DNA of 64,000 nucleotides from Pecten maximus (Eukaryota), in NCBI RefSeq assembly GCF_902652985.1, contig NC_047029.1:13020001-13084000 (forward strand). The letters are read 5' to 3'. Within the stretch, counting starts at the first letter, position 1. Each line of letters starts with the position of its first letter. Below are positions 4,455 through 43,643 of this stretch, in pieces. The notes beneath the pieces are model-generated. The model had not been told where the DNA came from and ran no database searches. It worked only from the letters and a program-made list of their open reading frames with translations. The position numbers and the translations under genes are program-made.

Positions 4455-4805
4455 GTGTACTGCAGTTATCCCCCCTTGAACCACTCAAATGTTATGTAAC
4501 ATACTGAACTGATCTCCCATCAAACCACTCAAATGTTATATCATATATTGTACTTATCTCCCCTTGAATCCCTGAAGTGTTGTGCAATATGATGTTGTGA
4601 TCAGTTTCCTGAATCACTCAGTGGCTATGTAATATAAAGGAATTATCTCCATTAAATCACTAAAGTGATAATGAAGTTATCTCCCCTGAATCATTCATAT
4701 GTTTTGTAATATACTGGAGTTATCCCCCTTTAATCACTCAATAGTTACCTTGAATCATTTTTGTGACATTGAAATTATCTCCGTTGAATCACTAAAGTGT
4801 TGTGT
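4455..4805. repeat. Degenerate ~42-bp minisatellite
   Basis: Recurrent gttatctcccttgaatcactcaaatgttatgtaatatactg variants. One more copy lies near 5290-5325. Confidence 0.75.
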
Positions 4806-7286: not shown

Positions 7287-7412
7287 CACTCGTGTGGCTA
7301 ATATTTTGATATTTTTCACTCGTGCTGCGCACTCGTGAAAAATATCAAAGTATTAGCCCCACTCGTGAAATATATTTGGTATTACTGAAGACTCTGTTAG
7401 ATATCCTCTATA
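7287..7412 (-). mobile_element. Truncated Crypton-like hairpin element end
   Basis: Hairpin 7287-7367 contains four cactcgtg motifs. The minus-strand terminus reads TAGAGG, like the element at 18609, and abuts a TA run. Confidence 0.6.
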
Positions 7413-7918: not shown

Positions 7919-7933
7919 GTGTGTGCGCGCGCG

Positions 7934-7971
<38 letters not shown>
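7919..7971. repeat. (GT)n microsatellite
   Basis: Direct reading. Confidence 0.95.

Positions 7972-7973
<2 letters not shown>

Positions 7974-11076: not shown

Positions 11077-11155
<79 letters not shown>
11077..11155. repeat. (TA)n(GA)n compound microsatellite flanking the Crypton element
   Basis: Direct reading. Confidence 0.95.
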
Positions 11156-11159
<4 letters not shown>

Positions 11160-13625
11160 CATGGTCAGTGTCTTAAAATATAAGCTGTATTTTGGCGAGG
11201 GTAAAGAAAGACAAAAGTGGCGAGCCTTGGCGAGCCACTTTTGTCTTTCTGTCCCGAGCCAAAATACAGCTTATATTTTAAGACACTGACCATGTATTCT
11301 ATTTATCCTGCACCACTCATCGACATTTAACATTTAATTTAAAGATGTTCCTAAAATGTTCGCATGAACAATGTTGCTTTCTGACGCTCCCTGGCGCATG
11401 ACAATATGCGATCAGCTGTTGAAGTGAAACTAGGTTAGATGACGTACGCTTTAAAGTATTCCGCGGTAAAAATATAGTTCCCGACATTTTCAGCTGAGCC
11501 AATGATTTCTTCATCTCACTGAAATTAACTTGACAGAAAGAAAAATGAACATAGCAATTTCCAACATGTATTCAAGTCATGGAGGGATATAATTAATTCC
11601 CTGACATATAGACATTCAGATTCTGGACATTCAGTACTGCCCCATAGAACATGGAGTTCATTGACATCTGTGATAGTGTGTTGTTTGTTACCGGATTAAC
11701 GTTAACATTTGAGGAATTAGAACTTTCTGGACAAGGATTTGGACACGTGTTTAAACTGTGGTGGGTAGATAGTATATTGGAGTAGTTTCTTTGTTGATTC
11801 TCAGTGATGGCACTCTAATTAATGATGGATTGGACATTTTTGTGCCCACTTATTTGCATAATGTCGGTTGGCGGTATGTTTTCATTTCTTAATTTTTGAA
11901 TAAGATGTTTACGCGCACTGTGGTTTGTGAGTTTCTTATGTGGATCAAGTTTTCTCTTTATTGCCATTGTTTTCATGAGACTGCCTAGTTTCTTTTCCCC
12001 GATTTACTGTTTTATGAACCATTTAACAGAACGCCCGTCTGTCAGTGGAATTGTCCTGGGGGCTATATAAAACGGATCGTCCTTTCCAGAGAAGCCTTCT
12101 GAGCGGTTTTCTGAATATACTTTGTACATTTGTACCGGGTCATTTTCGCCTCCATTTGAGAACATTTTTGGTGTAGTTTCCCTCGTGTCACATATGTTAA
12201 CACCCGTTCGCGTTTTTGTCTGTCTTTCATTCAACTCTAAATAAGAGTGACATCGCCCCATCTTAAATTGTAGTGCTCGCTGACCCCTCTAAGGCCAAAA
12301 TGTATGGAATTGTTAAGCCACACAGTGTTCAATAGAGCCTCTGGTGATGATTTCCCTAAAATGTTTTTGCGATATAAAATATTTATTTCGTCGTCCGTAA
12401 TAGGATCCGACTTGTTTACTTTGTTACCCTATCCTTGTTTTTTCAGCTGTTTTTGTTTTGCCGACAATGACAGAATTCGTTGGGATTCCCATTCATGATT
12501 TTGTGACCGTATTTTTGTCTCTGTAATTTTCTGTCTACACTGCCTATAATAGATCTGAGAGAGGTAGGTTCATATTCCCAGCCGTCCTTTTCTCGGACTG
12601 CAATAACAAAGTTGGCCAATAATGAATCTAATTCATCATGTGGAATGTTGTGTAAGTCTCTCGACTCGTTTTTCATAGCTAAAAATTTCTTGACAAGAGC
12701 GATATCATGCAATGTTTTTTTCTTGGTATTTTCATTCTTTTGGTTTTCAATGAAACTTTCTATTTCTTTCATATCGATGTTTACAAATTGTTCATTATCT
12801 CGAGTTGTTTTGGGTGGTGACGGCAAATAGGGTTCTGGTATAGCGGTGTTGTTGACGTCATTCATGTCCGAGTGCCCATGTATGTCATCCATATGGGGGT
12901 TAATGCTATCATCATCGACCATATTGATAGCAGTCATTAACTGAGGGTCATATTCATTTGGTATTTCTACTAAGTTCAGCCGCTGAGTCTCTGGAGGTGT
13001 AACATTGACGCTATCTAATTTTACAGTTTGACTGACAGAGGGTGTCGGTTCATTGTTCACATATTCAACAGCAGGTTCATGATTTAGATCTAATGATACT
13101 TCTCTTGGCATGTCAGGCTCTATATCAATTATATCACAGAGCAATTCAAAAGTTTGCTGACTAACATCCATTTTGAAATTGTCGTCATCTTCAATTTGTT
13201 CCTCAGACATATTGGCGTAGGTTGTTTGTTTACTTGTTGTTGTTGTTTGTTTGTTGACAGCGGTGACGTTAAGTTAAGAGCAGACGTCACGACGACGTCA
13301 AAAACGTCACAAAGCAGATCAGCGGAATATATATTGACTAGATATATTACAGATATAATCTAAATCCTGAAACATGATGCTTTCGACATGAACAAACAAT
13401 TTTTACAAATAAAAATAAAGCAAGATGATATTTATGACATGTGTGTAATGCGATTTTTTTTTTTTAACCGAGACCAAAGTTCAAGGTGTGGGTCATTCAA
13501 AAGTAGTTCCGTCTAGTCGAATTCATGCACGTGAAAAAATACAGCTGTTTTCCGTCACTGCCGTATACAGCAAAAATATATACGGTAGGTGTATTCCGAC
13601 AATGCGTTGGCAGTTGCAGGATAAA
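11154..13625 (-). mobile_element. Crypton-type tyrosine-recombinase DNA transposon, full length but inactivated
   Basis: Terminal hairpin at 11154-11300. Internal tttatcctgca (11302-11312) is inverted to the terminal tgcaggataaa (13615-13625). Encloses a degenerate YR gene and is flanked by microsatellite or TA-rich sequence. Confidence 0.88.
11593..13210 (-). pseudogene. Crypton tyrosine recombinase (DUF3504/ZMYM-KCTD1-related YR), with frameshifts and stops
   Basis: Minus-strand translation gives KNENTKKKT, EYEPTSL, SPEALLNTVW...HFGLRG..EH..L.WGDV, ERQTKTRTG, DPV..YK.Y, KLTNHSARK, IMQISGHKNVQSIIN*S and a C-terminal MFYGAVLNVQNLNVY. The catalytic Tyr codon is TAG (11815-11817), with another stop at ~12004. 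Confidence 0.88.
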
Positions 13626-16144
13626 AATATATATATGCATATACGCATATATATGTGTCTGTCCATAACGTCTATAAATACATCCTGCTTATGGTTGGTC
13701 ACGTGTTAGGTAAATCACGAATTAAGATTATACGATTAATAAATGCTAGCCTGTGGTTCTATTAATCTCCTAAATATCGGACTCTCGTAGCAACCCCTTA
13801 CAATGGCGAGAGCAATGTGTGTTTACGAATAAGGACCTTTCAAATTCAACAAATGGATTAATTTGGATTTAAATATTTTAACAAAATGAAACTCGATCCA
13901 AAGAAAGTAAGTAACTGAATTTGATTTTAAAACTTATTACGGTTGAGTTGTTTCAAAATTACCTTAACCTTTACATTCTATTTGACGCACCTTTACTTAA
14001 GTGCAATGTTAGTTTATGACCTTAACAAGTGTAAATGTAAAACCTGGACATTAATTGCAACGATTGGCTATCTGACTAGAAATGTTATTTTAATAGTCAC
14101 TGATGTGGTGAAGTGGATTACGTAGAAACAATACTTATTTTATTGTTACTAACAATAATCAGCTGTAACACATAGTTTAACGTCTTGTACCAAAGAGTGA
14201 AATCTACACAACAATACTTAAATGAGAATGATACATGAATTCACTGAAAAGGATGGAAATGAATACGAAACATACAATGCTATCTATTACACGTATTGGA
14301 TGTATTGAAATTGCTGCCAGTTGATTCAGCTGCTAAGCCATTCTGAATAAATCTCGTACTCAAATATTGCAAGATAATATGCTACTTAGTTTTTTTTTAT
14401 AATATATATTATATATATATTATATACGATGTCTCACATTTTTGTAAGATATTCAATAAAACATATAATTTTATTAGATACTTGAGAGACAGCTCTGTAA
14501 ATAAATGACAATTTGGCCTGACATACTCCGGCCGTGATCCCAGACAAATCATCAAACCCAAAGAAAGGTGACAATGTTTGAATAAGACTATGAAATAATA
14601 TCAATACTGTTCCTGCATAATCCAGATTTCATGTACATGTAAATAACAATAATATATCATCATTTAGAATGTTAAAATGACTGTGACATGTATATTTTGA
14701 TTTTATCTTTCATAATTAGAAAGTTGACCAATAACAATACCACACCGAATTTACTACCTAATGTGTTTCACTTAAGGGTATATGCTACATTACACGTAAT
14801 ACGTAATACATGTATATTTGTCTAATTAATATCTACCTCCATTATATTTTAAGGAACACTGAATAAATCATAGTAAAATCATTTTTACTACTTTTCCAGT
14901 GCATTGTCTACCAAATTAGAACATGTTTACCTATTACAGTAATTCATTTTGAGTGGAACTCGTTTGTAAAAGGAGAATAACATCAAATAAATAAAGCACA
15001 TTTCGATTCAGATCAGATAACCGTATATCTTCAGGATGGTTGGTATACAGTCGATATCTTTGTCAATTACATCGCCCGTAAAATTGAAAATTGATTATCC
15101 ATAGGTATATCAAATAATATAATTAAAAATAAAATTTGTAACGCTGACCTTTGTTTCATTAGGACAGTACAATATATATATATGATAGTGAATATTTTAA
15201 TGAGGTATCGATAAAAAGAAACCTATGCACCAAATTATATTGTTTTGTATTGATCAATGAAGGTAAGCTGAAGTTTAAACAATGCCAGAAGAAGGAAGTC
15301 CAATCATCAAGAAGGTCCAGTTTAAGACCAATAAACCCGATGGTCTTAGTTACAGGAACGAGTGGGTGAAATCCAAACGGAGAAGGTAAATACACAACGG
15401 TTATAACTTATATATATATCCCATATCACTTTGCGTTCGGGGAAAACTATTTGTGTGCATACAAATTTATATTTATTGTAATTTATTTTACAGCTTTCTC
15501 TGTTGTTTTCGTTTAGGTCTTGAAATAAAAGAGAAATAAAATTTGAATATGATAACTCCGTAAATGAGAAACATGTTCGCAGAATAAAAATTACCAGAAC
15601 AAAAAAAATTATTTGGCTCGATAAAGATCAGCTGATGTTTACAAAAGGCGGAATAGTTTTATATATGAATTAAGATATAGATACGTATATGTCGAATACG
15701 GTTCCTTTAGCCCCACCTATATGGAACGTAATCCTTCGCCTGGTATATAGTATAGCACGCAGTGAAGATACAACAATACCAGTTGTTTTTCTCCCTAATC
15801 AGATTAAGTTTTCTGATACCACACACCTAAAGCGAAGGTATTGCAGTACTGCCAATGACTAATCTCCGCACATAGGTAATTTGTACTTGGCAAGGTTAAG
15901 GTCGGATTCATTTAAATGTAACAGTACTGTACCGATAGAATCACAGTAAAATGGTGACATGATATCTGGAAATTCCTTGGAATGCCATCTCGGACTGCTT
16001 TGTCGTTCCGGAAAGTTATTCCGTATTTCATTTGTGGTGTGAATGTTTAGATACAAACACAAATGAGTATCTTTATCATTAGTTTGTGTAATTGGGCATT
16101 GGAGTAATAAGTCATACAACGTTTAGCAATGGTGAAAAAGGAAG

Positions 16145-19100
16145 ATGGAGTCCGAATACAATTACGCAGTATTCCAAGTGGATAATAGAAATACTCCGAG
16201 TTGTGACGAGTCATTACGACCGACGAGCTGTTCTAGTAGGGGCAGCAAAAGGTAACTTTGTATTCATATGTATTAAAATGGTAAGGACGTACCAGAAATT
16301 AACTTCCGTGGTTCATTTCCGACATATTTGTATATATTCAACGGAAATTCATTAATAATCTTGTATGCTTGTTTTGTTTGAACGTGGAATAATAATCATC
16401 CAGTTGGGAATTGGAAAACTATATTCAATTTAGTTAGATATACATTAATAATATACATAACCTATTATCTTATATGACCTTGTATACATCCTTGTGCGAT
16501 ATCAATTTTGGACTAAATAATAAAGTTGCTGAAATCCCCTTCGTGGCATTACGGACCACAAAGTCATCGGGGGTATATCACATCCCTGCACTTATTTAGG
16601 TGGAACTGCCAATACTTTCTCTTTGCTTCTTTAGGAATCGAATACAATCCCTTACTGATCACGAGAGTATGTATTATAGGGTCACAGAATACAACCCCTT
16701 ACTGGTCACGAGAGTATGTATTATAGGGTCACAGAATACAACCCCTTACTGGTCACGAGAGTATGTATTATAGGGTCACAGAATACAATCCCTTACTGGT
16801 CACGAGAGTATGTATTATAGGGTCACAGAATACAACCCCTTACTGGTCACGAGAGTATGTATTATAGGGTCACAGAATACAATCCCTTACTGGTCACGAG
16901 AGTATGTATTATAGGGTCACAGAATACAATCCCTTACTGGTCACGAGAGTATGTATTATAGGGTCACAGAATACAACCCCTTACTGGTCACGAGAGTATG
17001 TATTATAGGGTCACAGAATACAACCCCTTACTGGTCACGAGAGTATGTATTATAGGGTCACAGAATACAACCCCTTACTGGTCACGAGAGTATGTATTAT
17101 AGGGTCACAGAATACAACCCCTTACTGGTCACGAGAGTATGTATTATAGGGTCACAGAATACAACCCCTTACTGGTCACGAGAGTTTGTATTATAGGGTC
17201 ACAGAATACAACCCCTTACTGGTCACGAGAGTATGTATTATAGGGTCACAGAATACAACCCCTTACTGGTCACGAGAGTATGTATTATAGGGTCACAGAA
17301 TACAACCCCTTACTGGTCACGAGAGTATGTATTATAGGGTCACAGAATACAACCCCTTACTGGTCACGAGAGTATGTATTATAGGGTCACTGAATACAAA
17401 ATTGGTGTATGTAAAGCATACATGCCGATATCATTTTCTTATACCGTACATTTGAATGGTGCAGTTTTAAGATCATGATTGGATATTTACTGAATCGTTT
17501 ACGCGTACCGTAATATGTTTGCTGTTGTTCTAGTGATAGTGGACGTTTGTTCTTGTTCATATGATATTAGATGTTTGTCGTTGTTCAATGATATAAGCCG
17601 TTTGGTACTGTTCCGATGATATTTGTTTTCGTTTTAAGTTGTTTTGATGACGTATTGTATTGTTTTGATGATTTGAGATGTTCGTTGTTGGTGAGATAAT
17701 ATTAGATGTTGGTTATTGTTTTGATAATATGATATGTTTGCTGTTATTCTGAAGATATCAAATTTTTGTTGCTGTTTTGATGATATGAGAAGTTTGTTGT
17801 TAGTGAGATGATATTCGTTTTCGTTTTAAGTTTTTTTTTTATGAGATACTATGTTTGTATTGTTCTGAGGATATCATTAGTTTGTTGTTGTTCTGATTAT
17901 ATGAGATATTTATTTGTGATCCGATGATATTGGACCACAATTTACAGAAATGACAATTAGCGCTATCATAATCTAGTAGAAGACTTACTTATGTTACCGC
18001 TGAAATATATATAGCTGTCCGCTTGTTTGCAACACATTGTCCAGTATGGTTTCTGCCGAGGAATGGTTTTCGTAACTTCATATCTGTTTAAGATATTGAT
18101 TTAATACTCAAATCAAATTAACAGTGAAGTTTTTTTTTTAGTTTGTGTTTTACATACGCACTCGGCAAATATAACAACTAGGGTTACATCTGTCACGGTT
18201 CGATTTTACATTCAACCAAGGTTCTTGATTATACTTTATAGTACCGTGTTTTGAACATAAAAAACCAAACTACGTGTATATACAGGTCCATCATTTGCAA
18301 TATACAGTAATAACAACAAATATTTACAGCAGCACAGAATGAAACCAACTTCCTCAGTAACACAATATTTGTATTACCCCAAACTATAAATTACAAAGTA
18401 TCAAAAAGTATACCAGCCAGTAGCTTCTGTAAAGGTATAAGAGAAGTATACAACCAAATTGCAACTAATGAACTATCAGACAATGGCTGTTATATCTTCA
18501 TCCTTACTCCCACACATACTAGTTACATTCACATATGTAGACTTACACACTTTTCCATTCAAAATGGTGCACATATATTAGCATACACTGTTTTCAATAT
18601 TAAATACATAGAGGTTACACAACGAGTGGTTGTTGGATATGGAATTTATTTCACACGAGTAAGTTATTTTTTAAAAGTTACAAAAGACACGAGCTTTAGC
18701 GAGTGTTTTTCGCAACTTTTAAAAAATAACTTACGAGTGTGAAATAAATTCCATATCCAACAATTTCGAGTCGTGTGACCTGTTTCTACCACAATAATAT
18801 CGGCTTGAATCAAAGGGAAACGTGGCCAAGTATAATTTCGAGTATGCAAATAAAGTGTACCGGTGACGTCCGGGACCCGGTGATGTGACGTCATTTGATT
18901 ATTGATGACGTCAATAACAATTGCAGCTTGTGTGCCGTGTTAGCCAATCAAAATGCGTACAGAGTTTATACCACGTGTGGTATGTGGTATAAACAGATTG
19001 TTAATCAACAGCTGTAATGATGAACTGATGGTCTGAGAGTTGAATAACACAGGGTATTGTGGTAGAAACAATCATAATCACTCGCACACATTACCAAAAT

Positions 19101-22100
19101 AAATACATACACTCATACTACATATATTGTACATTCTGATAACATAGATTCACACTCACAATCAATATTTCAGCTATAATTAAACAAAATACTTTCATAA
19201 ATATACAAATGCATACTTCTACTAAGGGACACAACTCTCAACCGAAGGTACATAACTCGTAAAATCCATTCCCGTAACACATCATTGTAAAACTATGTTG
19301 ACAATTCTCACGTTTTGCATGTTTACAGTACCATATTTGGGGTGACAAAACGGGATTTAAATCGGGTTAAGGTTGACATCGACCGCCTGTGGAAAGAAAG
19401 GTGCTCTCTTGTGAAAAAGGAAAAGTAAGTCTCAATACATTTAGACAATGTATCCATTGCTTGGTAAACCTTGTTTCAATAAATAAAAAAAAACTTTAAG
19501 GACACTATTTTGAAAAGAAATCCGTCACTTTCGTATGTTTACCTGTTTGATTTAATAGCCTCACAAAATTCGAAACAAGACAAATAATCCATATCGCTGT
19601 CTACAGTTACATAGTCCGAATTACCAAGTTTATTTTCCAAACAGCCAATATTAATTGATTTATTGTGGGCTTAGTCTGTTTCTTTGAGTAACGGTTCCCC
19701 GTCATGTCATGTTTGGTTATCCAGCTCTGTTGTATTGTCATTTGAAATGACATTTTAATTATGTCAATTTTGCTCCTTCAGTCCAGATTTTGAAGATGTA
19801 ACGAGGCTGAAAAAGATTCTCACTGATGCCATCGACGTGACTGGACGAACTCGTATAAACGTCAGAGACAAAGAAAAGTATGTTTACAGATCTTCATTTG
19901 AATTGATTGTAGTCTTACAGTACAGTATATGATAATATCATATTGATATAGCATATGTTATACGGGCTTGTATATTTATAGAGATAGATGGTAAGAGGGA
20001 AACATAGATAAAACTCACATACATAAGTATACATACTTATGTATATATTCGTAAATCTAAATCAGGAAGTGATCGATTTACGTGGTATTAAATCAGTTAG
20101 AAATGTATGTACAAATCGTATTCTACTGCACTTGTATTTGATGAAGCCGACGACGCTTAGCATTCCAGAACGCGTGGTCTTGTTCTCCTGGCAGTTTTCT
20201 CTTATGTTTCCATGCAATTCCGACCACCTTTCTGTTTGGTTTTTAATACCTAAATCATACCTTTCTACACAATTAAATTTAAATGATTTTAACATTTATT
20301 CAATTTCGTTAAAACGATTTTGAGTTAGATTTACGCTTCGCTTGCCTATTGTTATTTTCTGTATTTTTCGGGAGCAAAATATTATACCGTTATTTGTTTA
20401 TATAAATAGCAGGGTTTATATTCACATCACACTTCCAAACACTCTAACAATTTGTCTTTATGTTCAATTCCTCAAACATGTGGATAGCAAGTCGTGATTA
20501 TGTCAATCTATTCTTAGGATATCGATTCTGGAGAAAATTGCAAAACATTAAATGATGTAACGAATGCTGTGTTATTGTGTGATGTAGACGTAAAATCTAC
20601 ATACTACATATACTATTTATATAACAAGGTGCTTTATATTGTTATGTTTTAGCTATGACGACAACGATGTGGAATCATTTTCAAAAGACATCAATGGGTT
20701 ACAGATGTTGTTTCACGGATGTTTGGAAATCTGGAATAACGTGAAAGAACCTACCAGGAAAGAGTATGTTCTTTCTTATGCCTTCAGTCTTTCATACTCT
20801 ATCAAAAAAAAAACCCATACAAATGATCATTCATATTATCATACCCCCTCTATGAGATTTACATTATAACACATTCTATATCTACATATATCATAATTAA
20901 GGGTCGTCATTTCCCCTTATCATTTCCAAACTTTATAAGTTGTATTTATCATGAAAGTAATACACATCAAAACTACCACCAGGAATATATATACGTCGGT
21001 AAGGTCCTTAAAAAGACCATGCTCCTGAACATATTATCAATATTTTGAAGTTTAACATTTTTAACGACACAAAGTAAATTGGTTTTAAGTTTACTGTATA
21101 TGTTTTCGAACGATTAATCATTTCATATTACAGATGAATGTCATGTAATGATCCGGTGATGATACATATGTATGATAGCAACAGTTGAATTATTATGTTC
21201 ATGATTATGTAAAGCGATTGAAGACGGTCATGCAACGAACTGGAAAAGTTTGGAATAAGAATACAAAAATATACATACATTCAACTTATAGAAAATGTTT
21301 TTGATGTGTGGTTAACATTTGTGATTGGTATAATTTCATGTATATTATATGATTCTTTCATAAAGGGGATATGGTGGTTATTTCCAAGCATTTTTCTTTT
21401 TCATCATGTTCCATAAATACCACCTTAAAAAAAAATCATAAAATAATGCGCGGGGTGGTGATTTTCGCGCTAAATGGCGATTAATAGTAAGTGTAATATT
21501 TAAAAAATGTGTAGATGAATGTGAAGTTCTCGGTTATTATTTCTTTATATTTAATTATTTATTGATTAATCATTGTTTGGATTTTATACTCGTTGGTGTT
21601 GCTAAGAGGTGGTTGTTATTAATTAATAGACGAAGACAAGAGATCCTTTCAGAACTAATGGAGCTAGCAACAGACCTTGCCTCTTTGTTCGGGGAAGTCA
21701 TGTCACTTTTCCTACAGAGGTAAGGCAAGGCCAAAATCGCAATATCTTTCAGAGGTAATGTAAATAACAACATACCTATAACAAAATACATTATACAATT
21801 GATACTTGATCAAACAAGACCCAAGGAGTCTATATGAATATACTGATATAATTCATTTTTGGAAAAATACATTGACATTTAATCTAGGATTATTGATTTA
21901 AACGTAATCGATATCGTTTAGCTATATATCAATCACTATGGAAATAATAACTATTGATTGATACACATTTTTTTAATGACATTTATGTTGACACGGTAAC
22001 GAGAGAAAGACTTAGTAATGACATAGCATTTCATACTAGCTTCGTGAAAAGAAATTGATGATGAATTGTATTTATATGTTTTATAGGTACTGCCGAATGA

Positions 22101-25100
22101 TTTTTATCATAACAAGTCTATGGGGGAAAGACATAAATGTTTCATCAAATCAATGCCAGATAATTGTTGAATCCAATGTTCTTTTCGTTTCCCGGATAGA
22201 TACTTCTGTACTACAAATGTTAACGCCATCGATTTCATGTGTCATATATAAACTAAACGCCATTACTAAAAATGCTATTTTGCTATAATACTAAAAATGT
22301 TATTATACTATGATACTTAAAATGTTATTATGCTATAATACTTAAAATGCTATTATGCTATAATACTAAAAATGCTATTTTGCTATAATACTAAAAATGC
22401 TATTGTGCTATAATACTAAAAATGCTATTGTGTTATAAAACTAAAAATGCTATTTTGCTATAATACTAAAAATACTATTATGCTATAATACTAAAAATGC
22501 TATTGTGTTATAATACTAAAAATGCTATTGTGCTTTAACACTAAAAATGCTTTTGTGTTATAATACTAAAATGCTATTTTGCATTAATACTAAAAATACT
22601 ATTATGCTATAATACTAAAAATGCTATTATGCTATATAAACACGTATGTTTTGTAGGTTTCAGTTGAACATCCTCCCAATGTTGAGACCGGTACATGGAC
22701 TGTTCTACGCTATGAGCATGCACTGCAGATATAATTGTCTGGACAGAGAGATCGAGTAAGTACAGTTAACATTATGTACGGCCAATATATTTAAGGATTG
22801 AATCTTGATTTGGTCGATTTCATGGGGTCATGAATTTAATTGCTCTTGAGACAAATTTAATGAACTGCGAAGCAGTTCATGTTGAATTTGTCTCAAGAGC
22901 AACTCAATTCATGACCCCATGAAATCGACCAAATCAAGATTCAATCCTTATATTTCAATTCTTTTTTTTTTCGAATAAAAAAGTCGGTCTAGATATTAAT
23001 GTCTCGAAGCTTGTGCAAGTCCAAATGCGGAAAACTCCGAGGAGTTCCGGATTGTGCATGTCTAGTCAATCGAGTAAAAGAGTCAGCAATATTAGGATTA
23101 AAAATAGCATTATTTTGTCAAAATAGAAGAATTTAGCATATCTGGTCTTTCATAAAATACAAGAATACATAATAAATTTGATAATTTTAATAATTATTCC
23201 ATGTTTATAACAACAATGTAGAAAAAGTGAAATCGTCCCGCGGAAGAATTTTAACCATGTATTCATACGCACTGATCAGTGTTAATCTGGTCAAATTCAT
23301 GAGCAAATGAAACAGATTAAGTTTGGTAGTTTCATTGAGTCCAACTTGAGTAGAAATTGAAATATTACATAATAACTATATATATATAATAAATGATATA
23401 TCTCAAACCCTTTAGAATAACGTTAAGATATCAACATTTATAAATAACTAAATTGTATTGTTTTATGTTTTAACAGCTTTCTGCCTGGCGCAAGAAATGT
23501 ATACTCCAGCTTCTTGTCTGGAGTTCTTGGATTGATGAGGAGCGCAAAAGTCCTTTTAAAGAGGCTTAAGTGAGTATACATACACATGATATTACTATTC
23601 CTACTCCTTGTACGTTTTGGTAAGTCCTTCTGTAATTTTTACATTTAATATATTGCCCTAATCTTTATTGATTACGGTTCTGTGTACGCCGTTCTTCTGT
23701 AATTCTTATCCATGTTCCTTTTAACCTAATAAGTATAGATCTCACAGATGTATATATACGTATCATATATCTTATGGAGGTAAACATATCAAATAGAAAC
23801 GCAGAGATTTGTTTCCTATATAATAATTCAAGGTTCATTTCAGATATGAAAATGACCAGGCTGGTCAAAGAAGAAGCATGATACAAAACAGCATATCCGG
23901 ATTTTTGACAGAAATATCAATCATCATCACACAAGGAACAAATCAGTATGTTTTCGGTATTTTAACAAAATTATATTTAACGTCAAAATCAGTTATTTAT
24001 TCACGAAGCAAGTATAATTATATAATACAATTCAAATCAATTTCTGATTAATTGATGTATGTAAGAATGTTGAAAACAACAATTGTTGTCCTTACATCAT
24101 TTCAAGCAAGTTATTGTATTTTACATCAGCAATATAATTACGTATAACAATTACGTGATGTATAGATATATACACTAAAACACAATATGATTTCCTATAT
24201 ACCGATATAGATGTAAACTATAACACCATGTTTTTAGTCTTTATATCAATATAATGTCAATTATCGGACGTACATATATGTGAATATCATTTAACCAACA
24301 CACACAATGTCATACAATTTTATTAACATTATAGAATATTATTTTTAACTATAAATTGACATTTCAGCGTTTCATTAGAAGAGTATAGACAGCTGATGTT
24401 TAAAGTTGGAAGTCTTTGTACAGATACTTTCTTTGGAATAGGGAAAACGAAAGGGTAAGTTTGTCGACTTCAGTTCTTATTACATGAATCAGGTACGAAG
24501 AACTTAATTCAGATAAAGATACGGAGTACAGTTAAAGATGAATTGAAATCTGTTATTATATACTAGTATATATTCGAATGAGTGGGCTGTATATGGATAC
24601 AATATAGATGATACTGATACCTATATGAACATGTTACATTCACTTTCAATCGAAATACAAAGAAGATGAGGATATTGTTTTTGATTTGGGGCATCATACC
24701 TCCATTATTATTCTGTAAACGTGCTTAATTTGACACACATTCATTTATTAGCGCAAAACCAACTAAAACAGATAAGCGGAATGATAAATAAGGGCACCAA
24801 CAATGGTTGCCATAGAAACTAATGTAGATAAACTACAATTAGCTCAATCATAATTTAGCGAAATGCTTCTAGCGCTAAAAACACTAAATTAGATAGATAA
24901 GAAAAATTAGATTACCCTCAAAATATGTACATATACAGTATTTAAAATAACATGGTATTTCTTCCTTGGGTAATCTTTGGTGATGGAAGATTAAATGTGG
25001 ATATACACCTTTTTCAGAATCGCAGATACATTGGAAATGGGAGAGGGTGTGGTGGCCTTGGAACCATGTAAGCACTTAGGTAATGTATCCTACTGTGACG

Positions 25101-34100: not shown

Positions 34101-35022
34101 GTTGATATCAATTATTCATGCATATAGATATCATACACTCACCTGTTATTATGTTCTGGTAAGGCATAAGTTAATTTTGTTAGGAATTGGTACCAATTAG
34201 GATGGATTTGACGTAGCGACATTTGTTATAGTTCGTCTAAGAAAAACACCAATCTCACACTGCCCCCCGAAATGTGTCGATATGTTGATTACATTATACA
34301 GTATTCTATCTGCTCTGGTAATGCTGGTATTAGTTCATACAGACATTCATATCGACAGGCAGACCAGAAGTTTGACCTAATTTTTACCATCATTGCTAAT
34401 GAGTTAATATTTATTCTTTCATTAGCCAAGTAAATAATCAGATAAATAGAAATACGAAACAGTGACCATCGATTATTACGTCACTGCCATGCACATGCAA
34501 ATATATGAGTTATTGTAAAGGGTATATGTAGCCAATATTGATAATAATTTATAAATGAAAATTCTACATGACGAAATGGCTGCTCACTTTAAACATCGAT
34601 TGATATTTGCGTATTTCTTTTGTTTAATGTTTAAACTAAACACGGTATTCGCTGTTACAATGAACATTTAACTTTCCTTCACACTAAATGAAGTGATTTT
34701 TGTCGCCTCAGATGACGTTCCAATACTAAGTCACCAGAGCTTACTTGCTCTTTCGAGCGCAATCAACATCCAAGTTGCCCAAGTGCTGGGCTCCCAGCTC
34801 GGGTTGCCGTACGAGGACATCATGGATATCAAGAGCATCAACCAGCCCCCTGTTGTCACTATCTTCGAGATTCTGTGGGAATGGAGAGGAAAGGTCGCTA
34901 CGCCGGACCAAGTGGAACAGCTTGTTCAATCATTCAATCAAATAAACCAAAAGTACTTTGCTGATGTCATTCTGAAGGCCAATAGAGAAAAACGAGGATT
35001 AACGCGGAAGGATTTCCAGTGA
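16145..35022 (+). CDS. Death-domain protein, DTHD1/PIDD-like (helical N-terminus-ZU5-ZU5-UPA-linker-death domain), ~871 aa. Exons: 16145-16251, 19329-19424, 19782-19877, 20653-20763, 21630-21719, 22657-22755, 23477-23569, 23844-23945, 24368-24454, 25018-25330, 26014-26193, 26444-26566, 26935-27107, 28767-29308, 33730-33822, 34712-35022
   Basis: All introns are GT-AG with compatible phases, giving one open frame of 2616 nt. ZU5-like motifs MISDIFQI...ITLRFP...W.DV and DNRVRINFPKDCF..PV...AISD...LP...TFQVDRF. The last exon is a death fold (LGSQLGL...I..IK...FEILWEWR...LV..F). The first exon is the least certain. Confidence 0.8.
16641..17399. repeat. 47-bp minisatellite, ~16 near-identical copies (intron 1)
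   Basis: Unit ccccttactggtcacgagagtatgtattatagggtcacagaatacaa. Confidence 0.97.
17515..17932. repeat. Degenerate ~25-bp GT-rich tandem repeat
   Basis: Recurrent tttgttgttgttctgatgatattagatg variants. Confidence 0.7.
18609..19069 (+). mobile_element. Non-autonomous Crypton-like hairpin element
   Basis: Hairpin at ~18611-18782. Internal tttctaccacaata (18783-18796) is inverted to the terminal tattgtggtagaaa (19055-19068). Confidence 0.8.
22264..22636. repeat. 25-bp minisatellite, ~15 copies, immediately upstream of an exon acceptor
   Basis: Unit actaaaaatgctatt(a/t/g)tgctataat. Confidence 0.93.
22792..23364 (+). mobile_element. Non-autonomous Crypton-like hairpin element
   Basis: Near-perfect hairpin at 22792-22950 with a GCGAAGC apex. 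Internal tatttcaatt is inverted to the terminal aattgaaata (~23355-23364). Confidence 0.8.
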
Positions 35023-38000
35023 AGTAGTAAATCCTTGTTGTAAAGGAGGGACTATTTAACGAGTTATAAGCATTTTCATTGGAATTTAATTGTTTTTGGT
35101 TACTTTATTCATAATGACTGAAGTTTGATGAATCCCTTTCTTATCTATAACAAAAGCCGCATTGACAATAATATCTTAATAAGATTGATGTTGGCTGAAT
35201 TGTGAATTTGTTACCAATACTATAATTCAATTTCACTTAGCATCAGTATTTTCAAAATGTATTGTGAATAATTGATAGATATAGTCAGTGCTACATAAAC
35301 CATATATATATATTCTATGGGATATAACCTAAGATTAAAATTCTAAATGTTTAGTACAAACTTCGGACTTTAGTTGACCATGTTTACAAAGTGTGTACTA
35401 GCAATATAAAAATACAAATCCCGAAATGTTTATTTTATCTGGCATATATTTTCTTTTTTAGAACTGCATTTAATTGATACCGGATTGATTGAATGCTTTA
35501 TGCTCAAATGGAGAAGAATGATTTTAACGAGCATATAACATATCAATTTTATTAATAAATACGAAATATCTCCATTAATTATCAGAATTCTGAAGATATG
35601 GAAATGATACGAGTATTTAAATACCTAACGTCAATCCGTTGTACTTTATGTATGAACCCATTAATCATGTTATAAAGTGATTTTTAGTATTGTTTACTAT
35701 TGTATATATCGTACGTGTACGTCAAACATCCCATTACCAAAAGTGCATTATAATAAATTATATGATCGTCTATGTTAAGAATATTTGATGCATAAGATAT
35801 CTTCATTTGATATACTGGAAAGTTAGAAGGATAAGTTGAAATTGCTGTTTTCTTTTTTTGCTTTTTATTCCGTGCTCCATATCAGCTAAAACATACATAT
35901 CCCAAGTCCATGCTGGGCTACTTTTTGTATTGGATTAAACTATTCATCATTAAAAGCAAAGTGAGTTCCGTTTTATATAATGTGTTATCATTATTTTACA
36001 TTGTAAATCAAATTCAATTGGTTGTTGAATAGTAAACCCAAGTGTTAATCCCAAGTTTAATTTCATTAGTAAACTTTAAACATATAAACAATCTCGGAAG
36101 TTATCGGACACAATGAATAGAATAGCTAATATTTGTTCATCGCGATGTTATTTAATTTTTATGTTAAAAGAAAGGACAACATATTACTTCTCTTTTAGGC
36201 CAGTGCACTAGCTGTATATACCGTCAAATGTTTTATTTGCACGGCGCCACGAGTAGACACCAGGTCTAAAACGCCTTTATGACTTAGAAGAATTAGATGG
36301 TTATCAATCTGAAAGGTAATTCAAAGTCATTATTTGTTACGTATGGTGCAGATGTCAATGGAATGTATGTATGTAATGTGAAAATAAAGACGATAGGTAA
36401 TAGAAACAAATACAGTGGAAAATACTAGGTTTTCAAGGTCGTTTATTTGATAACATGTAGTATTACTCACAAAATGACCTTCAAATTATTTGAAGTGCGA
36501 TCAAATACACTTTAGATAATTACTCGCACGAGTTATTGCCTAACAGCTGATATTGGTAAATCGCTGATAGTAATCACTGTCTATGTATATTAACAATCAA
36601 TTACGGATCCCAATGGTCGATAAAGACCACCTCACGTTAAAGCGGTCATTACACAGCACGTCCTGTGGTTGGCCCATTGTCCGGTCGAGGCATCTGTCCG
36701 TGATATCGTCGAAAACCAGAATTATAGATGACAATCTCGTGGATTTGAACACCTGCCATTTCAAACAGCGCGCGTTAGAACAGAGTTTAAGGCGGCTTAC
36801 TTATGTATATCTACTTCATTAAGTAATCCATTATCGAATGGTCTATACTTCAATAGCAGGTCAACCCCCGTTGTATTATGCATGTAAAGTATTATCAATC
36901 TAACAACACTCATATGATATATGCACACCTACCATCAGAACGCTATTTTTTGATGCACAACTTATATTAACCTAATCAATACATTTTTACATTTATCCTC
37001 TTCAGCTTGTTTATACACTATCCATTTTGTTTTATTCAATTTGTTTGATGTCTAGTTGTTAAATTTCACGAGGCTAAAAATTCGCTGTTATCAGAGTCAG
37101 ACCTAGTTTGCTATATTAAATTTTGCACACCCACATCTTGTAAACGTTCTGCCATAAACGCTTTAAACGTTTGTGTGTACATATAAATATTAGACGTGTA
37201 TTTATTTTTGCGCTATATTTACTGACGCCGAAAATAGCGAAATTTAACCCCCATGAATATTACCAAATATACAGTGTACAATTTTGGAAACCGAATTACT
37301 ATCCCAAAAATGAATAACATTTCTGATCAACACTTAATTAGATTTCAGATTTTATAAATTAAGTTAATTGATGTATCAGTATTCATACTGTCATTTTCTC
37401 TAATAAAATTGAAAGGCTGTGTGGCAGATAGAAGTGAAAATAACGGACGCGTGAAAACCATTGCACTATGGCAGTAAGATAGCAATGAAACTTAAATATA
37501 TTCTCATCAATATCACTTTCATCAAATAACTGGACAGAAAAAGTTTTCGTTATACCTCAAAATCATTCTGCGTTGTGTTGTGCAAATACACAAACAACCA
37601 AGAATTACAGATTTATTTATCTTTTGATATATATACAGAAATTACTCCTTTTTTCAAATTCCCACCCGATATCTCATCTCTTTGAATATGTTACTTGCCT
37701 TGGGACAAATACGTATCATAAGTGAACCTACACATGTTCGGACATATATCATTGTACAGTGCATTGATTTATTTCGTTTGAGCAGTTAAAATGTCGTACG
37801 TGCATGCTATGCTTTGGGGGATAAAATGAATATAGTTATTGGATGATTATGTCAATTACTGCGTTGATATCAAGGGATGATATCAACTGACAGTTTTATC
37901 TTTCAACTGTATCGCTTGACATTTGTTCAATAACGCTCGTTCAGAAATGTTATGATATATTAATTAAGAGGGAACTTGCTATATATACATGTATATATAA

Positions 38001-38944
38001 ATCGGTACTTAGACTGGTATACTGATTCTGCACTGGTGAGCTTAAGGACAGGAACGGAAGTATCTGAAGAATCGTTGTAGAATAAGGTAAAACTTCTTTA
38101 ATGCTAAAAATTATCGCATTTGTAATAAATGTATTATACAAAGTGACTTATATTTTAAGAGACCGAGGAAATAAATGTTATTGCATTTGAATATTCAATA
38201 TACAGGAGGTATAATTACAAGTACCGGCTTAGGGTTAACATATACACTGTTAAATTCAACAGTGTGCATTTTAAAACTATATTTCAAGTGTTCTTTTAAA
38301 TTCGAGACATTTTATTTGATTCATCACACGTAATGCAATATATAAAACGAATTTCAACTCTAGATATTTCAATTCTTGATTTCTTGAGTAGAATGGTTAT
38401 AACTACAAATGTACAATTGGATTAGTTTTTAGGCATATGTCCAGGTTGATAATGTTCCAGGATATTCAACTAAACAGGCAAACGTGTTCTTGTCATAGTT
38501 AGGATTTCTACATGTAACAATTTAATAAATATTCAGGTACGTTTTAGTAGACTTTATTTTGGATTGAGAATATTCGAGAAACGCAATGTAGCGCGAAAGG
38601 AAATATTCAAAATAAGCAATGCAACATGAAAGGCAATATCCATGTATAATCTAAGTACATACGTAATTCCATAGTTTATACAGCGTATAACATGACAAAT
38701 CTAAAGATGTGTTTAATTCTTTTCTTTTCATAATATAGTTAAGGTATTTTGTTTTCTAGAAATTTTCTATTTTCATAAGCGGTGTCCAGACACATATTTG
38801 AATCATAAGATACATTTATATCAAAATGCTGATGCATTGTATCTTTTTCGAACATGAATATAATATTATGATTTTATTAATATTATATAAGCAATACATT
38901 TGGAGTACTGGTATTCATGAATATGTTTATTTCAGAACACAATT

Positions 38945-39208
38945 ATGAAGCTGGCGATCATTGTCGTGACAGTTGGTGTCTGCCTATTTGAATTGTCATT
39001 GTGTGCTGAAATCATGGGGGCTCCATCAATGGAAGGCATAGACCGGGACTGCTGGAGTCTATGCTGGCAAGACTACACTCACTGCCACAAGTACTTCCAA
39101 TGTGCCGATCGTCTGGGAGACGAAAGCAACGGCGAATGTACAATGTATTGTGCTGGTCGTAACAAGAGGTGTATGGACAGGTGTCTTGCTGTTTCGAACC
39201 AAAAGTAA
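38945..39208 (+). CDS. Secreted cysteine-rich peptide precursor, 87 aa (signal peptide, short acidic propiece, 8-Cys domain)
   Basis: Hydrophobic leader MKLAIIVVTVGVCLFELSLC. Cys spacing C-X3-C-X6-C-X5-C-X11-C-X3-C-X6-C-X3-C. Acceptor tttcag at 38935 before the ATG and AATAAA at ~39438. Confidence 0.85.
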   Translation: MKLAIIVVTVGVCLFELSLCAEIMGAPSMEGIDRDCWSLCWQDYTHCHKYFQCADRLGDESNGECTMYCAGRNKRCMDRCLAVSNQK

Positions 39209-42200
39209 TACCAATGGCTGTTCTTCTTCAAGGCGAATTCATACGTCGTGTATGTAACTTTATTTCGGAAAACTATTAATTACAAACTTGTATCTTCATT
39301 CAGTATGCTTGAATATATTGGCGGAAATTGTATTCATTTTTCATAACAACATTATCCTCATCACAGTGTGTAGTAATGTCTGGGACGGCGTTACCACGGT
39401 TAATACTCTCCGCCGTCGAATTTCTTGTATTCTTTTAAATAAACGCGATCATTGAAATATTTACTTTAATTCCATGTTGTCGTGGTCTTCTAAACATAAA
39501 AATAACTCAAAATATCTCAAAGAATAAATGTTGTAGATGGAACTATATTTTGCTTGTGTTGTTGTTTTGACGGTTGCTAAGACCGTGCCGAGAACTGCCA
39601 TACACTTTCCTGCGAAAACGGCTGTTCTCTCTCTGACGTCCATCACGGGTAAAAACAGAACCAAATGCATTTGTTTATTTTTGGGTGCTTTAACAGATAA
39701 GATAAAATAATCATAATCTAAATATAAGAAATGTTGTTATGACATCATAAATGTTTCAAAAATAGATTTCATTCCTTAATAGTTAACCTCCTTCATTTAT
39801 ATTGTGATGTTTAGGTTTTTTTGTTTTTTTTATTAATTGAATATTGAAGAATTGACCTGTAAAGAGGAGTATGTTTTATAGATGAAAACGGTACTTGCTC
39901 CATGTTTGTAGAAATAAATAGTTAAAGATTTCTCATATTGATTATTTACGATTTACGACTACCAGATGAACCTCTCCGGGCTCGCTTTTAAGTGATAGCT
40001 CTATTGCAGACATGCCGTTGCAGTTACATGTTTATATGAAATAAAAAGCGTAGACAGTTACTCTTCATATTTGAGAGGGTGGCAAGGTGTTTCTCTTAAT
40101 GTAACATTATAAAGATGTCATAGTCATCATACTAAATCTCATAATTGTACGAGGGGCAAAAGCCGCCAGTATTACAAGCGCTGAATGTATAGAGGTGACA
40201 GCATATCATCTAAAACGAATAACTAATTTATCTTTTGGATTGTTCTAAATGATGAGTTCCCCCGTATTTACGTTCAATTTTAGTACCCGTAAAAATATGT
40301 AATGATATATGTTTTTCATGGACCCATAATGATTAACTAAAATAGCTTAAACATCTTAATTAGGTAGACTAAACGTTACCAATATCCAGACGCACATAGG
40401 CCAATTACAATGTACGTCAATGTAGACGTTTTGATGAATAACAGACGGTATTAAGGGCCGTCATAAGCACACTTAGATAAGTTGCGAGATTGCAGTACGA
40501 TTTCTGCTTATCACATGTTGTTTTTTTTTCCTCTTGTCTTCATGCACCAGTAGAGTACGTATTCGAAACGTGTGGGACAAGGGATAAAATTCATTATTGA
40601 ACTATACCACAACGATTATTATATTACTGTAAGACATTATTTTGTAAAAAAAAAAAAAAAAAAAAAGAGTGACATTTATGCCAAGTTTAAATATGAGTAG
40701 CATTTTTTCTCGGAGCAGCTAACCAAAGGCAGTGTTGAAGCCATGTATGTTTCCATCATTATTTTGCATTTGCGAGTTAACGAAATATTGCCAGACCAAA
40801 CTCTGACGAATGATCAACTTTAGACCTTTTGCGTTCCACCTATTATGGGGAATAGGTACATAATTGTGTATCGAATACATTACGCATGGCAGTATTCCTG
40901 TACACTCAACGGTCCGTTAAATGAGATATAAAATGCATGTTGTTTTCCTAATATTGTAGTTTACATATTAATTAATAATAAAGTTTTTGGAGATTCGTGT
41001 CACAATCGCGTGTATTTTTATATTTGTCATGTGTGTCTGTATATATTGTGACTTGCTGTTACTATCTGTATTGCGTAACGGATGTTCCGTAGAGGGTGAG
41101 TGAGCGCGCACGAGCGGGAGCCATGACAGTGCTCTAACAGGCTGTGTCGACGGATTAGATGTGTTTAACATTATACGGGCACAGAAACCTTACAGTCTGT
41201 GGTAAGTATTGCTTTAGCAGTTAGTAGTTATATATATTTTGTGATAATCTTCGCTTATTTTGTGTAAAAGGGGGTTATTTAACCTTGGAATGTTGTTCAT
41301 GCATTATGTCAACGTGCGGTCCAATCATGCATATCTTTCCATGATTTGTAATTGTTTTAATTGATTTATGTACATTTGCTCAATCGTACTTCCAAATGTA
41401 AACATATATATTAGAGTGAAGCTAGAGTATTTCCAGCGTCATTGTTTAATCTTATTTTTGCTTCGTTTTGTTAGTTTACTCTATCACGTCAAGTTAAACA
41501 CAACAACAAAACAGACAACATATTGGTATTTGTATATAATACATTCCGGCATTCGTTACAATATGTAATATCATTCTAAACGTTGTGTGTATTGATTGGC
41601 GAAATGTGTGTTGAAAAACCTTGATAACAATTGTAAAAGACTTTTCTTATATCATTAATTATTCACATATATATGTCGATGAATCGTGATCTAGATAAGT
41701 AAACGGCATGGACTAAAACATGGGTGGTTACTTTTTAAATAAAAAACGAAAACAGTGTCTTACAGAAGCTTAAACACTTTCTTTGTCGTAATGCTCCATT
41801 GAGAACATATAAAACATTATTATGAATGGGATTGGTGTGCATGATTTGAATATGAAAAGGCGCAAAGAGAAGCAGTCTTTATTATTACGGCCCTTCCATC
41901 ATTTGGCCGTATTGAGCATTTACGTTATGAAATAGACTTTAACCCTTGATAATAATAAAGTGAACTGTTTCTAGCCATAGAAAACTACAACTGCTATATA
42001 AGATGTACAACAACTTAACTCATGACTTCCTGGATTATCTACTGGTACCTATTATTGGCGAAAACAATCACTTTGCTGTGCGAAACAATAATAACTGCAA
42101 AGTTCCTCTATCAAGACTCCCTCGTACCAGCTCTTCTTTTATACCTTCAAGTCTTCATAGTTGGAATGCATTAAAATGATGCAGTTTGTTTACTACTTTC

Positions 42201-42645
42201 ATTAGATTTCTACAGTCTCCCCGGCTATATTTTGGGGATATGAGAATCGCAAGATGATTATTTTTCATAAAAGCTTTAGATAGGTGTGTATTTCCCTTAA
42301 TTATTATCTTTGAAGAGCTAACTTTGTAAATAATGCAGAATATACTTCTGTAATGCTGTGAGAATGTCTTCACTACTTTTTTGAAAGTCGTTTTTTTATT
42401 AATGAAAGAAAATATTCTTAAACTTGGGCCATTTTTTTTGGGGGGGGGGGGGGGGGGGGAGGGGGAACTCACATCTAACATTGGACCTGAATTAAAAAAA
42501 AAATCTTAAGATATGTGCAAACCTTTATTAACCCCAGCAACATCTTTTGTTATTTATCAATATTGTACTATTGTTGAAGTATGAGAAGGCGTAGAGAAGT
42601 TTTTGTATCAAAGGCCGGTCTGGCCTGCGTGGGACCTGAGGATAT

Positions 42646-42850
42646 GGACCGCGGTAGCCGAGTTGTTAAGGTGTCCCGACACTTTATCATTAGCCCACCA
42701 CGTCTGGGTCGCGAGTTCGAAACCCACGTGGGGCAACTGCCTTGTACTGACCGTAGGCCGGTGGTTTTTCTCCGGGTACTCCGGCTTCCTCCACCTCCAA
42801 AACCTGGCACGTCCTTAAATAACCCTTGCTTTCAATATGAAGTTAAACAA
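42646..42850 (+). mobile_element. tRNA-derived SINE (V/Meta-type central domain)
   Basis: A-box-like tagccgagttg, B-box gagttcgaaacc, conserved ggtttttctccgggtactccggcttcctccacc and an AAAC-type tail. A second copy lies at 55907. Confidence 0.85.
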
Positions 42851-42854
42851 TATT

Positions 42855-43261
42855 TAAGCATTGAACTGCTTTCATTTGGAAGTTATGGACTGATGAATGC
42901 CAACTGGACAAAGGCAAATTTAAGGAAGCGCGCTAGCGCTTCATGTTGAATTTGCCTTTGTCCAGTTGGCATTCATCAGCCCATAGCTTCCAAATGAAAG
43001 CAGTTCAATGCTTATATTTACATTTGACAACGATTTTTAAAGACTATATCCAGGAATTTTGCTCCGACGATGAAGAAACAAATTATTATCGTCAAAGACG
43101 GAACAGCTTTTTCAACAGCCATCTTTCGTTATCACCGATGTGACAATTATGACGTCACTATAATAATGACGTCATAATAAAGATTGGAAGTTATGGACTC
43201 ATAACTTCCAAGTGAGCTTGGTAGAGTTATATAGTGGGGCTGCAGTGTAAATGTAAATATA
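42855..43261 (+). mobile_element. Non-autonomous Crypton-like hairpin element inserted in the SINE tail
   Basis: Hairpin at 42855-43014. Internal tatttacattt is inverted to the terminal aaatgtaaata (43249-43259). The SINE tail aaaccaaac resumes after it. Confidence 0.8.
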
Positions 43262-43643
43262 AACCAAACAATATCAAAGTAAAGAAGTTGGTATAACTAA
43301 TCTTTCGTTATAAGTTTGACAATATCTGTGTTTAAATCAAATTTATTTCCGATACTTCTACAGAGAAAACTAAACACATATTAATATAAACAAATGTTCT
43401 CCCTTTGCGTTTTGGATGTAGGCTATTTGTAATTTATATCACTAGGTAGCTGATGTACATTTATAGTCAAACGAAAGCACCTGAAAGTTATTCCGTTGAT
43501 AGCGAATCTATAACACGTTAAATGAAACAAATTTTCGCGGGATTTCATTATGAAAAATTCTTTTAATTCCTTTGTGAAAAGGTATTTTGACATAAAATTG
43601 CAATACAATACAGGTACATTGTGTGTTAATTAGTGATACTGAG

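Follow-up and report, generated by a model that had tools for sequence, protein, structure and literature searches.

Among eukaryotic DNA transposons, no class is less well understood than the Cryptons, and what is said of their mechanism rests on analogy; the sole direct observations, on CryptonF in Chlamydomonas, reportedly show a gain in copy number beyond what simple excision and integration would give. The recombinases of DIRS retroelements have long been thought to be Crypton-derived, and the vertebrate regulators ZMYM2-4 and QRICH1 derive from the same recombinase lineage. Kojima and Jurka found no terminal repeats in animal Cryptons and traced DUF3504 to CryptonA recombinases (PMC3212892), and published descriptions of fungal Cryptons give direct repeats of 4–6 bp only. 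A 2022 curation guide gives Cryptons no distinguishing mark other than a short direct repeat (PMC8969392), and a 2026 study of CryptonA could not define element boundaries (PMC13465315); Cryptons are hard to annotate because their ends have been described as featureless. DIRS-1 has an essential internal complementary region (ICR) and passes through a single-stranded DNA intermediate (PMC7192593). Here, we describe four elements, E1 to E4, in a 64-kb stretch of Pecten maximus DNA (the window, meaning the whole stretch that was analysed, which is free of N), each of which ends in a long palindrome directly beside an inverted copy of its opposite terminus. They are best explained as CryptonA-type DNA transposons, of which E1 is a decayed autonomous copy and E2–E4 are non-autonomous. 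Full-text searches of the literature gave no description of a hairpin or an ICR in Cryptons, and relative to those published descriptions Cryptons with a DIRS-like ICR and a terminal palindrome are a variant not reported before.

The whole window was searched for local inverted repeats with arms of at least 40 nt. There are only five such repeats in 64 kb, and four of these, which are the longest local palindromes of the window (arms of 55–91 nt), are each the terminal hairpin of one element. E1 (11154–13625, minus strand, 2.47 kb) is of the autonomous, CryptonA-like type, decayed and with its recombinase on the minus strand, and its hairpin at 11154–11300 has outer arms that are 91% complementary in addition to an inner stem. 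E2 (18612–19070, plus strand, 459 bp), E3 (22792–23365, plus strand, 574 bp) and E4 (42855–43262, plus strand, 408 bp) are non-coding. The E2 hairpin spans about 18612–18781 in the scan (91-nt arms, 81%), that of E3 lies at 22792–22950 (22789–22953 in the scan, 72-nt arms, 94%) and that of E4 at 42855–43014 (42852–43017 in the scan, 72-nt arms, 94%).

The 11–17 nt that adjoin each hairpin reappear, inverted, at the opposite end of the element. The reverse complement of this hairpin-adjoining sequence was aligned against both element ends, and in all four elements it divided cleanly between a portion from the right end and a portion from the left end. The far end of E1 (13615–13625) was an exact reverse complement of the internal site at 11302–11312 (11/11), with a single unpaired base, that is, one extra internal base, separating the internal site from the hairpin. 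The right end of E2 (19055–19070) matches its internal site (18781–18796) at 16/16 positions with a 1-nt overlap with the left end, that of E3 (23355–23365 against 22950–22960) at 11/11 with a 1-nt overlap, and that of E4 (43246–43262 against 43012–43029) at 17/18 with one gap and a 3-nt overlap, TAA. For a null, we took 20,000 random window positions and asked for an inverted match that starts no more than 3 nt away and lies within 3 kb, which gave probabilities of 0.029, 0.013 and 0.0025 for matches of at least 10, 11 and 15 nt, respectively. Single far-end matches are modest on their own by this measure, and E3 has a competing 10-mer at 24540; the joint chance for all four is about 1 × 10−8. 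In E1, the internal site, X, reads TTTATCCTGCA on the plus strand and, with the adjoining hairpin arm, is the reverse complement of the circle junction, and the far terminus, x, which is the 5′ end in the sense of the recombinase, reads TGCAGGATAAA on the plus strand.

Folding the right and left ends together as one DNA strand makes the stem grow across the junction in 4/4 elements. The computed free energies of the joined against the integrated form are −84.5 against −70.1 kcal/mol for E1, −75.1 against −57.6 for E2, −90.2 against −80.1 for E3 and −95.2 against −85.0 for E4, so that joining the ends gains 10–17 kcal/mol. On these predicted folds, the rebuilding of a junction duplex by the folding of a single strand appears geometrically sound. 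An earlier sequence-only reading of this DNA had proposed four elements with one layout, which holds, and a junction that would lie within an extended stem of a single-stranded circle, with which the predicted folds agree. Its element ends were close, with shifts of 1–3 nt that place E2 at 18612–19070 and carry E3 to 23365 and E4 to 43262. It took the four sequences to be largely unrelated, which does not apply to E3 and E4, as these two are related to each other. It also took the joined ends to be the reverse complement of the internal site, which is so in all four elements, if not always exactly, as E1 and its mussel relative L006 carry one extra base.

None of the four elements has long direct or inverted terminal repeats. 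At the termini themselves, E4 shares TTA/TAA at both ends, E3 has TTA at one end and TAA at the other, E2 has the overlap of 1 nt and E1 shares nothing. The flanks of E4 also share a 9-mer, AAACAATAT, at 42840–42848 (6 nt before 42855) and 43266–43274 (4 nt after 43262), for which a rough hand estimate gives a chance of about 0.4%; this may be a short local tandem repeat of the target rather than a target-site duplication.

The coding capacity of E1 points to the lineage to which these elements belong. Its tyrosine recombinase pseudogene (11815–13210, minus strand) consists of an N-terminal open reading frame (ORF) of 255 aa (12443–13210) followed by pieces in two other frames. The remnants were searched as separate pieces, with no joined, repaired or consensus version made, and match the QRICH1 domain, DUF3504 and Phage_integrase; pieces are 56% and 70% identical to P0001, an intact protein of 533 aa. 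Two frame changes and several stops interrupt this gene, including a stop where the catalytic tyrosine would be expected (just below 11815), and E1 is therefore a dead copy. In intact relatives of this recombinase, the catalytic residues R, K, HxxR, H and Y are retained, and these similarities support E1 as a Crypton-like element of CryptonA (DUF3504) type. E2–E4 have no coding capacity. They have the layout in common with the coding families, and the E2 hairpin has the same TC/TC bubbles as the recombinase-encoding families (see below); no coding partner with the termini of E2–E4 was found among the fetched loci.

To place E1 among its relatives, we collected 1,448 relatives of its recombinase with phmmer and fetched the DNA around relatives as loci (numbered L001 onwards; the best protein relatives, L001, L002 and L004, are short transcript-like contigs without flanks). 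Read in the sense of the recombinase, the common layout starts with the 5′ terminus x, followed by about 400 nt with a putative promoter region, the gene, about 450–600 nt, X and the terminal hairpin. X is the reverse complement of x and lies 0–7 nt from the hairpin, an imperfect palindrome of 100–185 nt; on its 3′ side, the element ends at the outer edge of this palindrome. Because X abuts the palindrome, X and the proximal arm together are the reverse complement of the distal arm joined to x, that is, of the joined ends. A TARA metagenome scaffold (L003) encodes an intact recombinase of 594 aa between x (200–214) and X (2880–2894), which match at 15/15 positions, although the contig end cuts the hairpin. 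In Mytilus coruscus (L006), a 14-nt x at 4570 pairs with X at 7957–7970 and the hairpin extends to 8130. Two full-length 3.3-kb copies in an ENA assembly (L009 and L010) have the layout, as do L018 and L064 from JGI metagenomes. E1, whose hairpin is likewise its 3′ end in the recombinase sense, agrees in layout with L003, L006 and L009/L010, and the recombinase is the sole gene of the complete copies L003, L009 and L010. The 5′ termini of the four coding families (E1, L003, L006 and L009) have the motif TTTATnnTGyA in common.

The boundaries of two multi-copy families were read from the onset of unrelated flanks and are thus independent of the logic of inverted repeats. The copies in L007, L009 and L010 are 93–98% identical (L007 is truncated on its 5′ side), and the similarity between L009 and L010 begins exactly at x and stops 0–10 nt beyond the hairpin. 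In a metagenome family (L011–L064), 12 independent 5′ junctions have flanks that are unrelated up to one common terminus, each preceded by TTA, usually in the context WT-TTA, and AAW follows the hairpin edge at which five 3′ junctions stop. The same target context, with TTA/TAA before and AAT after, surrounds E3 and E4. Exact crossover nucleotides are precise only to 1–3 nt, and the common TTA/AAW context suggests that the elements have in common either an A/T trinucleotide crossover or a preference for the target. L027, a member of this family, has an internal site complementary to the 3′ end, TTA and the 5′ end in succession, save for one C/T mismatch in the arm.

Three further features accompany the relatives. 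In the L009 family, a second, shorter copy of the inner terminal hairpin, with its apex flipped, lies just upstream of the start codon of the recombinase (L007 4934–5037, L009 4916–5008 and L010 4934–5037). Directly against the 3′ end of the Crypton in L007 stands an ordinary miniature inverted-repeat transposable element (MITE; 7962–8223) with 17-bp terminal inverted repeats; a hairpin with a 17-nt inverted match that had looked like an extra small element in this locus was rejected, as comparison of copies assigns the match to the terminal repeats of this neighbouring MITE. L008 contains a 300-bp unit (3324–3625) that fits the layout, with a hairpin, a 16-nt inverted far end and a 6-nt terminal overlap; a 400-bp palindrome without spacer upstream of an intact recombinase in the same locus (4302–4707) was left unused, as the contig has 3x coverage and the palindrome may be an assembly fold-back.

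Terminus and internal site change together. Two positions of the terminus vary among members of the E1 group (TGCAGGATAAA in E1, TACAGGATAAA in L006 and TGCAAGATAAAA in L003), and the internal site of each element matches the terminus of that element. The right ends of E3 and E4 change in step with their internal sites, and their hairpin stems differ at many positions with pairing kept. Six hairpins of the metagenome family show compensatory double changes in 24/36 predicted stem pairs. Covariation of termini with the internal site was a test that the sequence-only reading had proposed, and its two broader assignments also fit: the label Crypton-like is borne out by the DUF3504 and Phage_integrase remnants of E1 and by intact relatives with the R-K-HxxR-H-Y residues, and the likeness it drew to the ICR of DIRS elements is apt. 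Taken together, the loci show the layout to be a genuine conserved property of the lineage of the E1 recombinase.

The stems are conserved in their irregularities as well. Two or three 2 × 2 mismatches of the form C-TC-G on both arms occur in E1, where there are two together with an asymmetric internal loop, in E2, in L006, in the L009 family, in the metagenome family and in an orphan hairpin of the window (7286–7368, 83 nt, two CAC-TC-GTG bubbles), which is of the same class as the Crypton hairpins. These TC/TC bubbles sit at equivalent positions of the stem, and the motif is direct and not inverted; on the opposite strand the mismatches are tandem G.A. An asymmetric internal loop of 2/3 nt about 18 bp below the apical bubble is a further feature common to E1 and the L009 family, despite their differing sequences. 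In a plain duplex the bubbles are ordinary base pairs, and their conservation therefore suggests that a folded or extruded form is recognised, or that they are protein sites of the same polarity; the persistence of the irregularities speaks against the arms being copied from one another in each cycle. Short copies of arm segments are found near the x end in 7/8 elements (null expectation of 7–18% each); the one in E1 is an 11-nt copy at 13536–13546, a candidate accessory binding site.

The window also holds eight occurrences of the perfect cAMP-response element (CRE) palindrome TGACGTCA, against 0.69 expected, and five of the eight lie inside E1 (12853), E2 (18886 and 18906) and E4 (43150 and 43167). 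The remaining three (25096, 27308 and 34035) are outside any such element. CRE half-sites cluster at 13265–13315, upstream of the start of the E1 recombinase, and this cluster is possibly the promoter of the element.

Starting from the observed architecture, element boundaries, conservation and covariation, we favour, tentatively, a mechanism in which the element passes through a single-stranded form whose two termini pair with the internal region next to each other and are then joined by the recombinase. On a single strand, the two termini would lie adjacent on X and the proximal arm, which would act as an internal splint, and the annealed termini would form a nicked duplex that places both ends for recombinase-catalysed joining. 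Folding would in this way recreate a double-stranded core site from a single strand, and the resulting circle would insert into A/T-rich targets through a shared crossover of 1–3 nt. Because X and the proximal arm complement the joined ends, one strand can present a duplex junction; the DIRS1 ICR and the CTX-phage and integron sites follow the same logic. The conserved stem irregularities, which are visible only in folded DNA, are one reason for preferring this mechanism; the other is that a duplex-only cycle shows no evident need for the abutting internal inverted copy. The fuller proposition, that animal CryptonA move through folded single-stranded DNA, with the recombinase acting on a duplex that the strand makes for itself, and that the DIRS ICR was inherited from a Crypton ancestor, is in our estimate rather unlikely in its entirety.

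Several observations weigh against joining on a single strand. Tyrosine recombinases normally act on duplex DNA, and the complete copies encode nothing that produces single strands, neither a reverse transcriptase nor a Rep protein. No circle junction, tandem or head-to-tail copy was found in any fetched sequence, where the search gave only the internal sites themselves, and no single-stranded form was seen. Between internal site and junction there is a difference of 1–3 nt in E1, L006, L009 and L018. The polarity of the bubbles relative to the gene is uniform in most families, yet L030/L032 have the opposite TC/GA orientation, as L003 apparently does (its hairpin is the one cut by the contig end), and a fixed active strand is for that reason not supported. 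Nor is the layout universal: neither hairpin nor layout is present at L005, where the same scallop genome encodes an intact recombinase, and many related recombinase loci lack a hairpin, including the rest of the 27 metagenome loci with at least 700 nt past the recombinase match, of which about 10–13 have a hairpin 350–620 nt past that match. The layout thus marks a large part of the recombinase lineage and not all of it. Finally, a complement of the junction is the automatic result of a palindrome with an abutting inverted repeat, and a duplex mechanism could use it too.

Such a duplex mechanism would start from an ordinary duplex excision circle, in which X, the hairpin and x make up one long perfect palindrome that serves either as two inverted core sites or as an extruded four-way junction bound and resolved by the recombinase. 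Excision as an ordinary duplex circle is also what Goodwin is said to have modelled for Cryptons. Action on duplex sites and resolution of four-way junctions are established properties of tyrosine recombinases, the conserved bubbles would be exposed in a cruciform as well, the arm-segment copies near x in 7/8 elements resemble accessory protein-binding sites (as candidates), and E4 has TTA/TAA at both ends, as expected from short terminal direct repeats. The active CryptonF of Chlamydomonas likewise shows site-specific recombination with a short shared motif (bioRxiv 10.1101/2022.05.23.493040). We nevertheless consider this explanation unlikely, if still of real weight, since it gives no obvious need for an internal inverted copy within 0–7 nt of the terminus in every family, the junctions of E1 and E3 have no dyad-symmetric core site, and the extrusion of imperfect palindromes in chromatin is known to be unfavourable. 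The layout could also be read as two features with nothing to do with each other, in which x and X are binding sites of 11–17 bp (short terminal inverted repeats), the palindrome is a separate module (a transcription terminator, a structure of the 3′ untranslated region, a source of small RNA or a replication signal) and the complementarity to the junction has no function. The hairpin does lie downstream of the recombinase gene, as a terminator or untranslated-region structure would, the complementarity follows logically once both features are there, and the L009 family has its second partial hairpin just upstream of the gene. Yet comparison of copies sets the end of the element at the outer edge of the hairpin and not at X, the non-coding derivatives retain the full hairpin with no gene to terminate, X and the hairpin stay adjacent across families of unrelated sequence, and an Rfam scan gave no known RNA family (a tRNA scan was empty as well). 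This makes the separation into two features improbable.

The likeness to DIRS also admits mobilisation through RNA in trans, with the internal region restoring the termini and joining them on single-stranded cDNA made by the reverse transcriptase of another element. In formal terms, the layout is the same as that of the DIRS1 ICR, an essential region in an element whose intermediate is single-stranded cDNA (PMC7192593), and there are promoter-like regions beside x as well as the CRE excess. This route is nonetheless quite improbable: the recombinase is the only product of the complete copies, no reverse transcriptase is associated with them (the one in L007 belongs to a neighbouring element of long-terminal-repeat type), and there is no poly(A) or other mark of a retro-copy. 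A rolling-circle transposon of Helentron type (HINE-like), with an asymmetric inverted repeat and a 3′ palindrome as its signature and the E1 recombinase as cargo, would have the same topology, a 5′ sub-terminal inverted repeat with a 3′ copy followed by a palindrome (PMC7492417, PMC8969392), and such elements are abundant in bivalves. We give this reading only a very slight chance and exclude it, mainly because at least five families have a tyrosine recombinase as the sole gene between the ends, its distance from either end being fixed, and because there is no Rep/helicase among the window ORFs of at least 120 aa. Furthermore, the palindromes here are not short, at 100–185 nt, neither a tandem-repeat core nor a microsatellite was seen (by reading for E1–E4 and in the repeat listing for E1), and the flanks are varied and not consistently T/T. 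The joining of termini on a folded single strand therefore remains the mechanism that we prefer, at the tentative strength given above.

Outside the elements, the window has several putative host genes and repeats. An intact single-exon ORF of 687 aa at 1890–3953 (plus strand) has Mab-21 nucleotidyltransferase and HhH/H2TH-like domains of the type found in cGAS-like receptors, and belongs to a large, expanded scallop family with Pecten maximus paralogues that are up to 89% identical. An exon-like ORF at 9417–9986 (plus strand) covers a full fibrinogen C-terminal domain (E = 2.6 × 10−60) and is preceded by an ORF with a weak PAN-domain match (9027–9389, plus strand); together they are probably a fibrinogen-related host gene. 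Matches to the Major Facilitator Superfamily at 43644–44624 (minus strand), 60085–60516 (plus strand) and 60967–61464 (plus strand) are probably exons of two transporter genes, and E4 lies about 400 bp from the first of these ORFs. The orphan hairpin lies directly 3′ of two diverged copies of a repeat of about 190 bp (6935–7260), and the alignment search for far ends found no matching far end for it. Simple repeats include a (GA)n tract at 11096–11153, which directly adjoins the hairpin end of E1, a 34-nt poly-G run at 6417–6450 and a (TG)n tract at 7920–7970.

A conserved end architecture that is precise to the nucleotide would give a practical rule to delimit animal Cryptons and to find non-autonomous relatives of theirs that are probably catalogued at present as palindromic repeats of unknown kind. 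Such an architecture would tie Cryptons structurally to DIRS retroelements and make the question of mechanism experimentally concrete through x, X, the choice of strand and the bubble motifs; the DNA shape recognised by the ancestral recombinase may also bear on ZMYM2-4 and QRICH1. If transposition by folded single-stranded DNA is true, eukaryotes would have in it an equivalent of integron attC and CTX-phage recombination, and the DIRS ICR would have been inherited from a Crypton ancestor rather than invented for reverse transcription.

Parallels for parts of this architecture come from several systems. The IS200/IS605 elements have sub-terminal hairpins and ends joined on one strand, with a single-stranded circle proposed as intermediate, but these are bacterial elements with an HUH Y1 transposase, whereas the enzyme here is a tyrosine recombinase. 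In integron attC sites and CTX-phage attP, as could happen in the elements described here, intrastrand pairing of two inverted stretches makes a duplex site, and the strand could be marked by stem positions that are conserved as unpaired or mismatched; the bacterial systems are experimentally proven, whereas the present case consists of geometry and conservation, with a mismatch orientation that is not uniform. Helentrons, Helitron2 and HINE elements share the asymmetric inverted repeat followed by a 3′ palindrome, with a stem that is extended by the joined ends, and Helentron/Helitron2 elements are common in bivalves (PMC7492417), but they rely on a Rep/helicase HUH enzyme and have short palindromes, often tandem repeats, and T-rich sites.

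The closest matches are Cryptons themselves and DIRS1. Like known Cryptons, the present elements have a tyrosine recombinase of DUF3504 type with a QRICH1-like N-terminal domain as their sole gene, probable non-autonomous derivatives, no clear target-site duplication (the 9-mer beside E4 aside) and, in some copies (E4), a few nucleotides shared at both ends; they differ from them in the long terminal palindrome and the abutting inverted copy of the other terminus. Like the elements here, DIRS1 encodes a tyrosine recombinase, has a short A/T trinucleotide at the junction and carries, by its 3′ terminal repeat, an internal stretch that is the reverse complement of the joined ends. Unlike DIRS1, the complete copies L003, L009 and L010 have no reverse transcriptase, RNase H or methyltransferase, and the recombinase is of the DUF3504/CryptonA clade. 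There are also no long inverted terminal repeats here, as just 11–17 nt of the 5′ end are repeated, inverted, and the 3′ end is directly adjoined by its own complement, with which it makes a simple hairpin.

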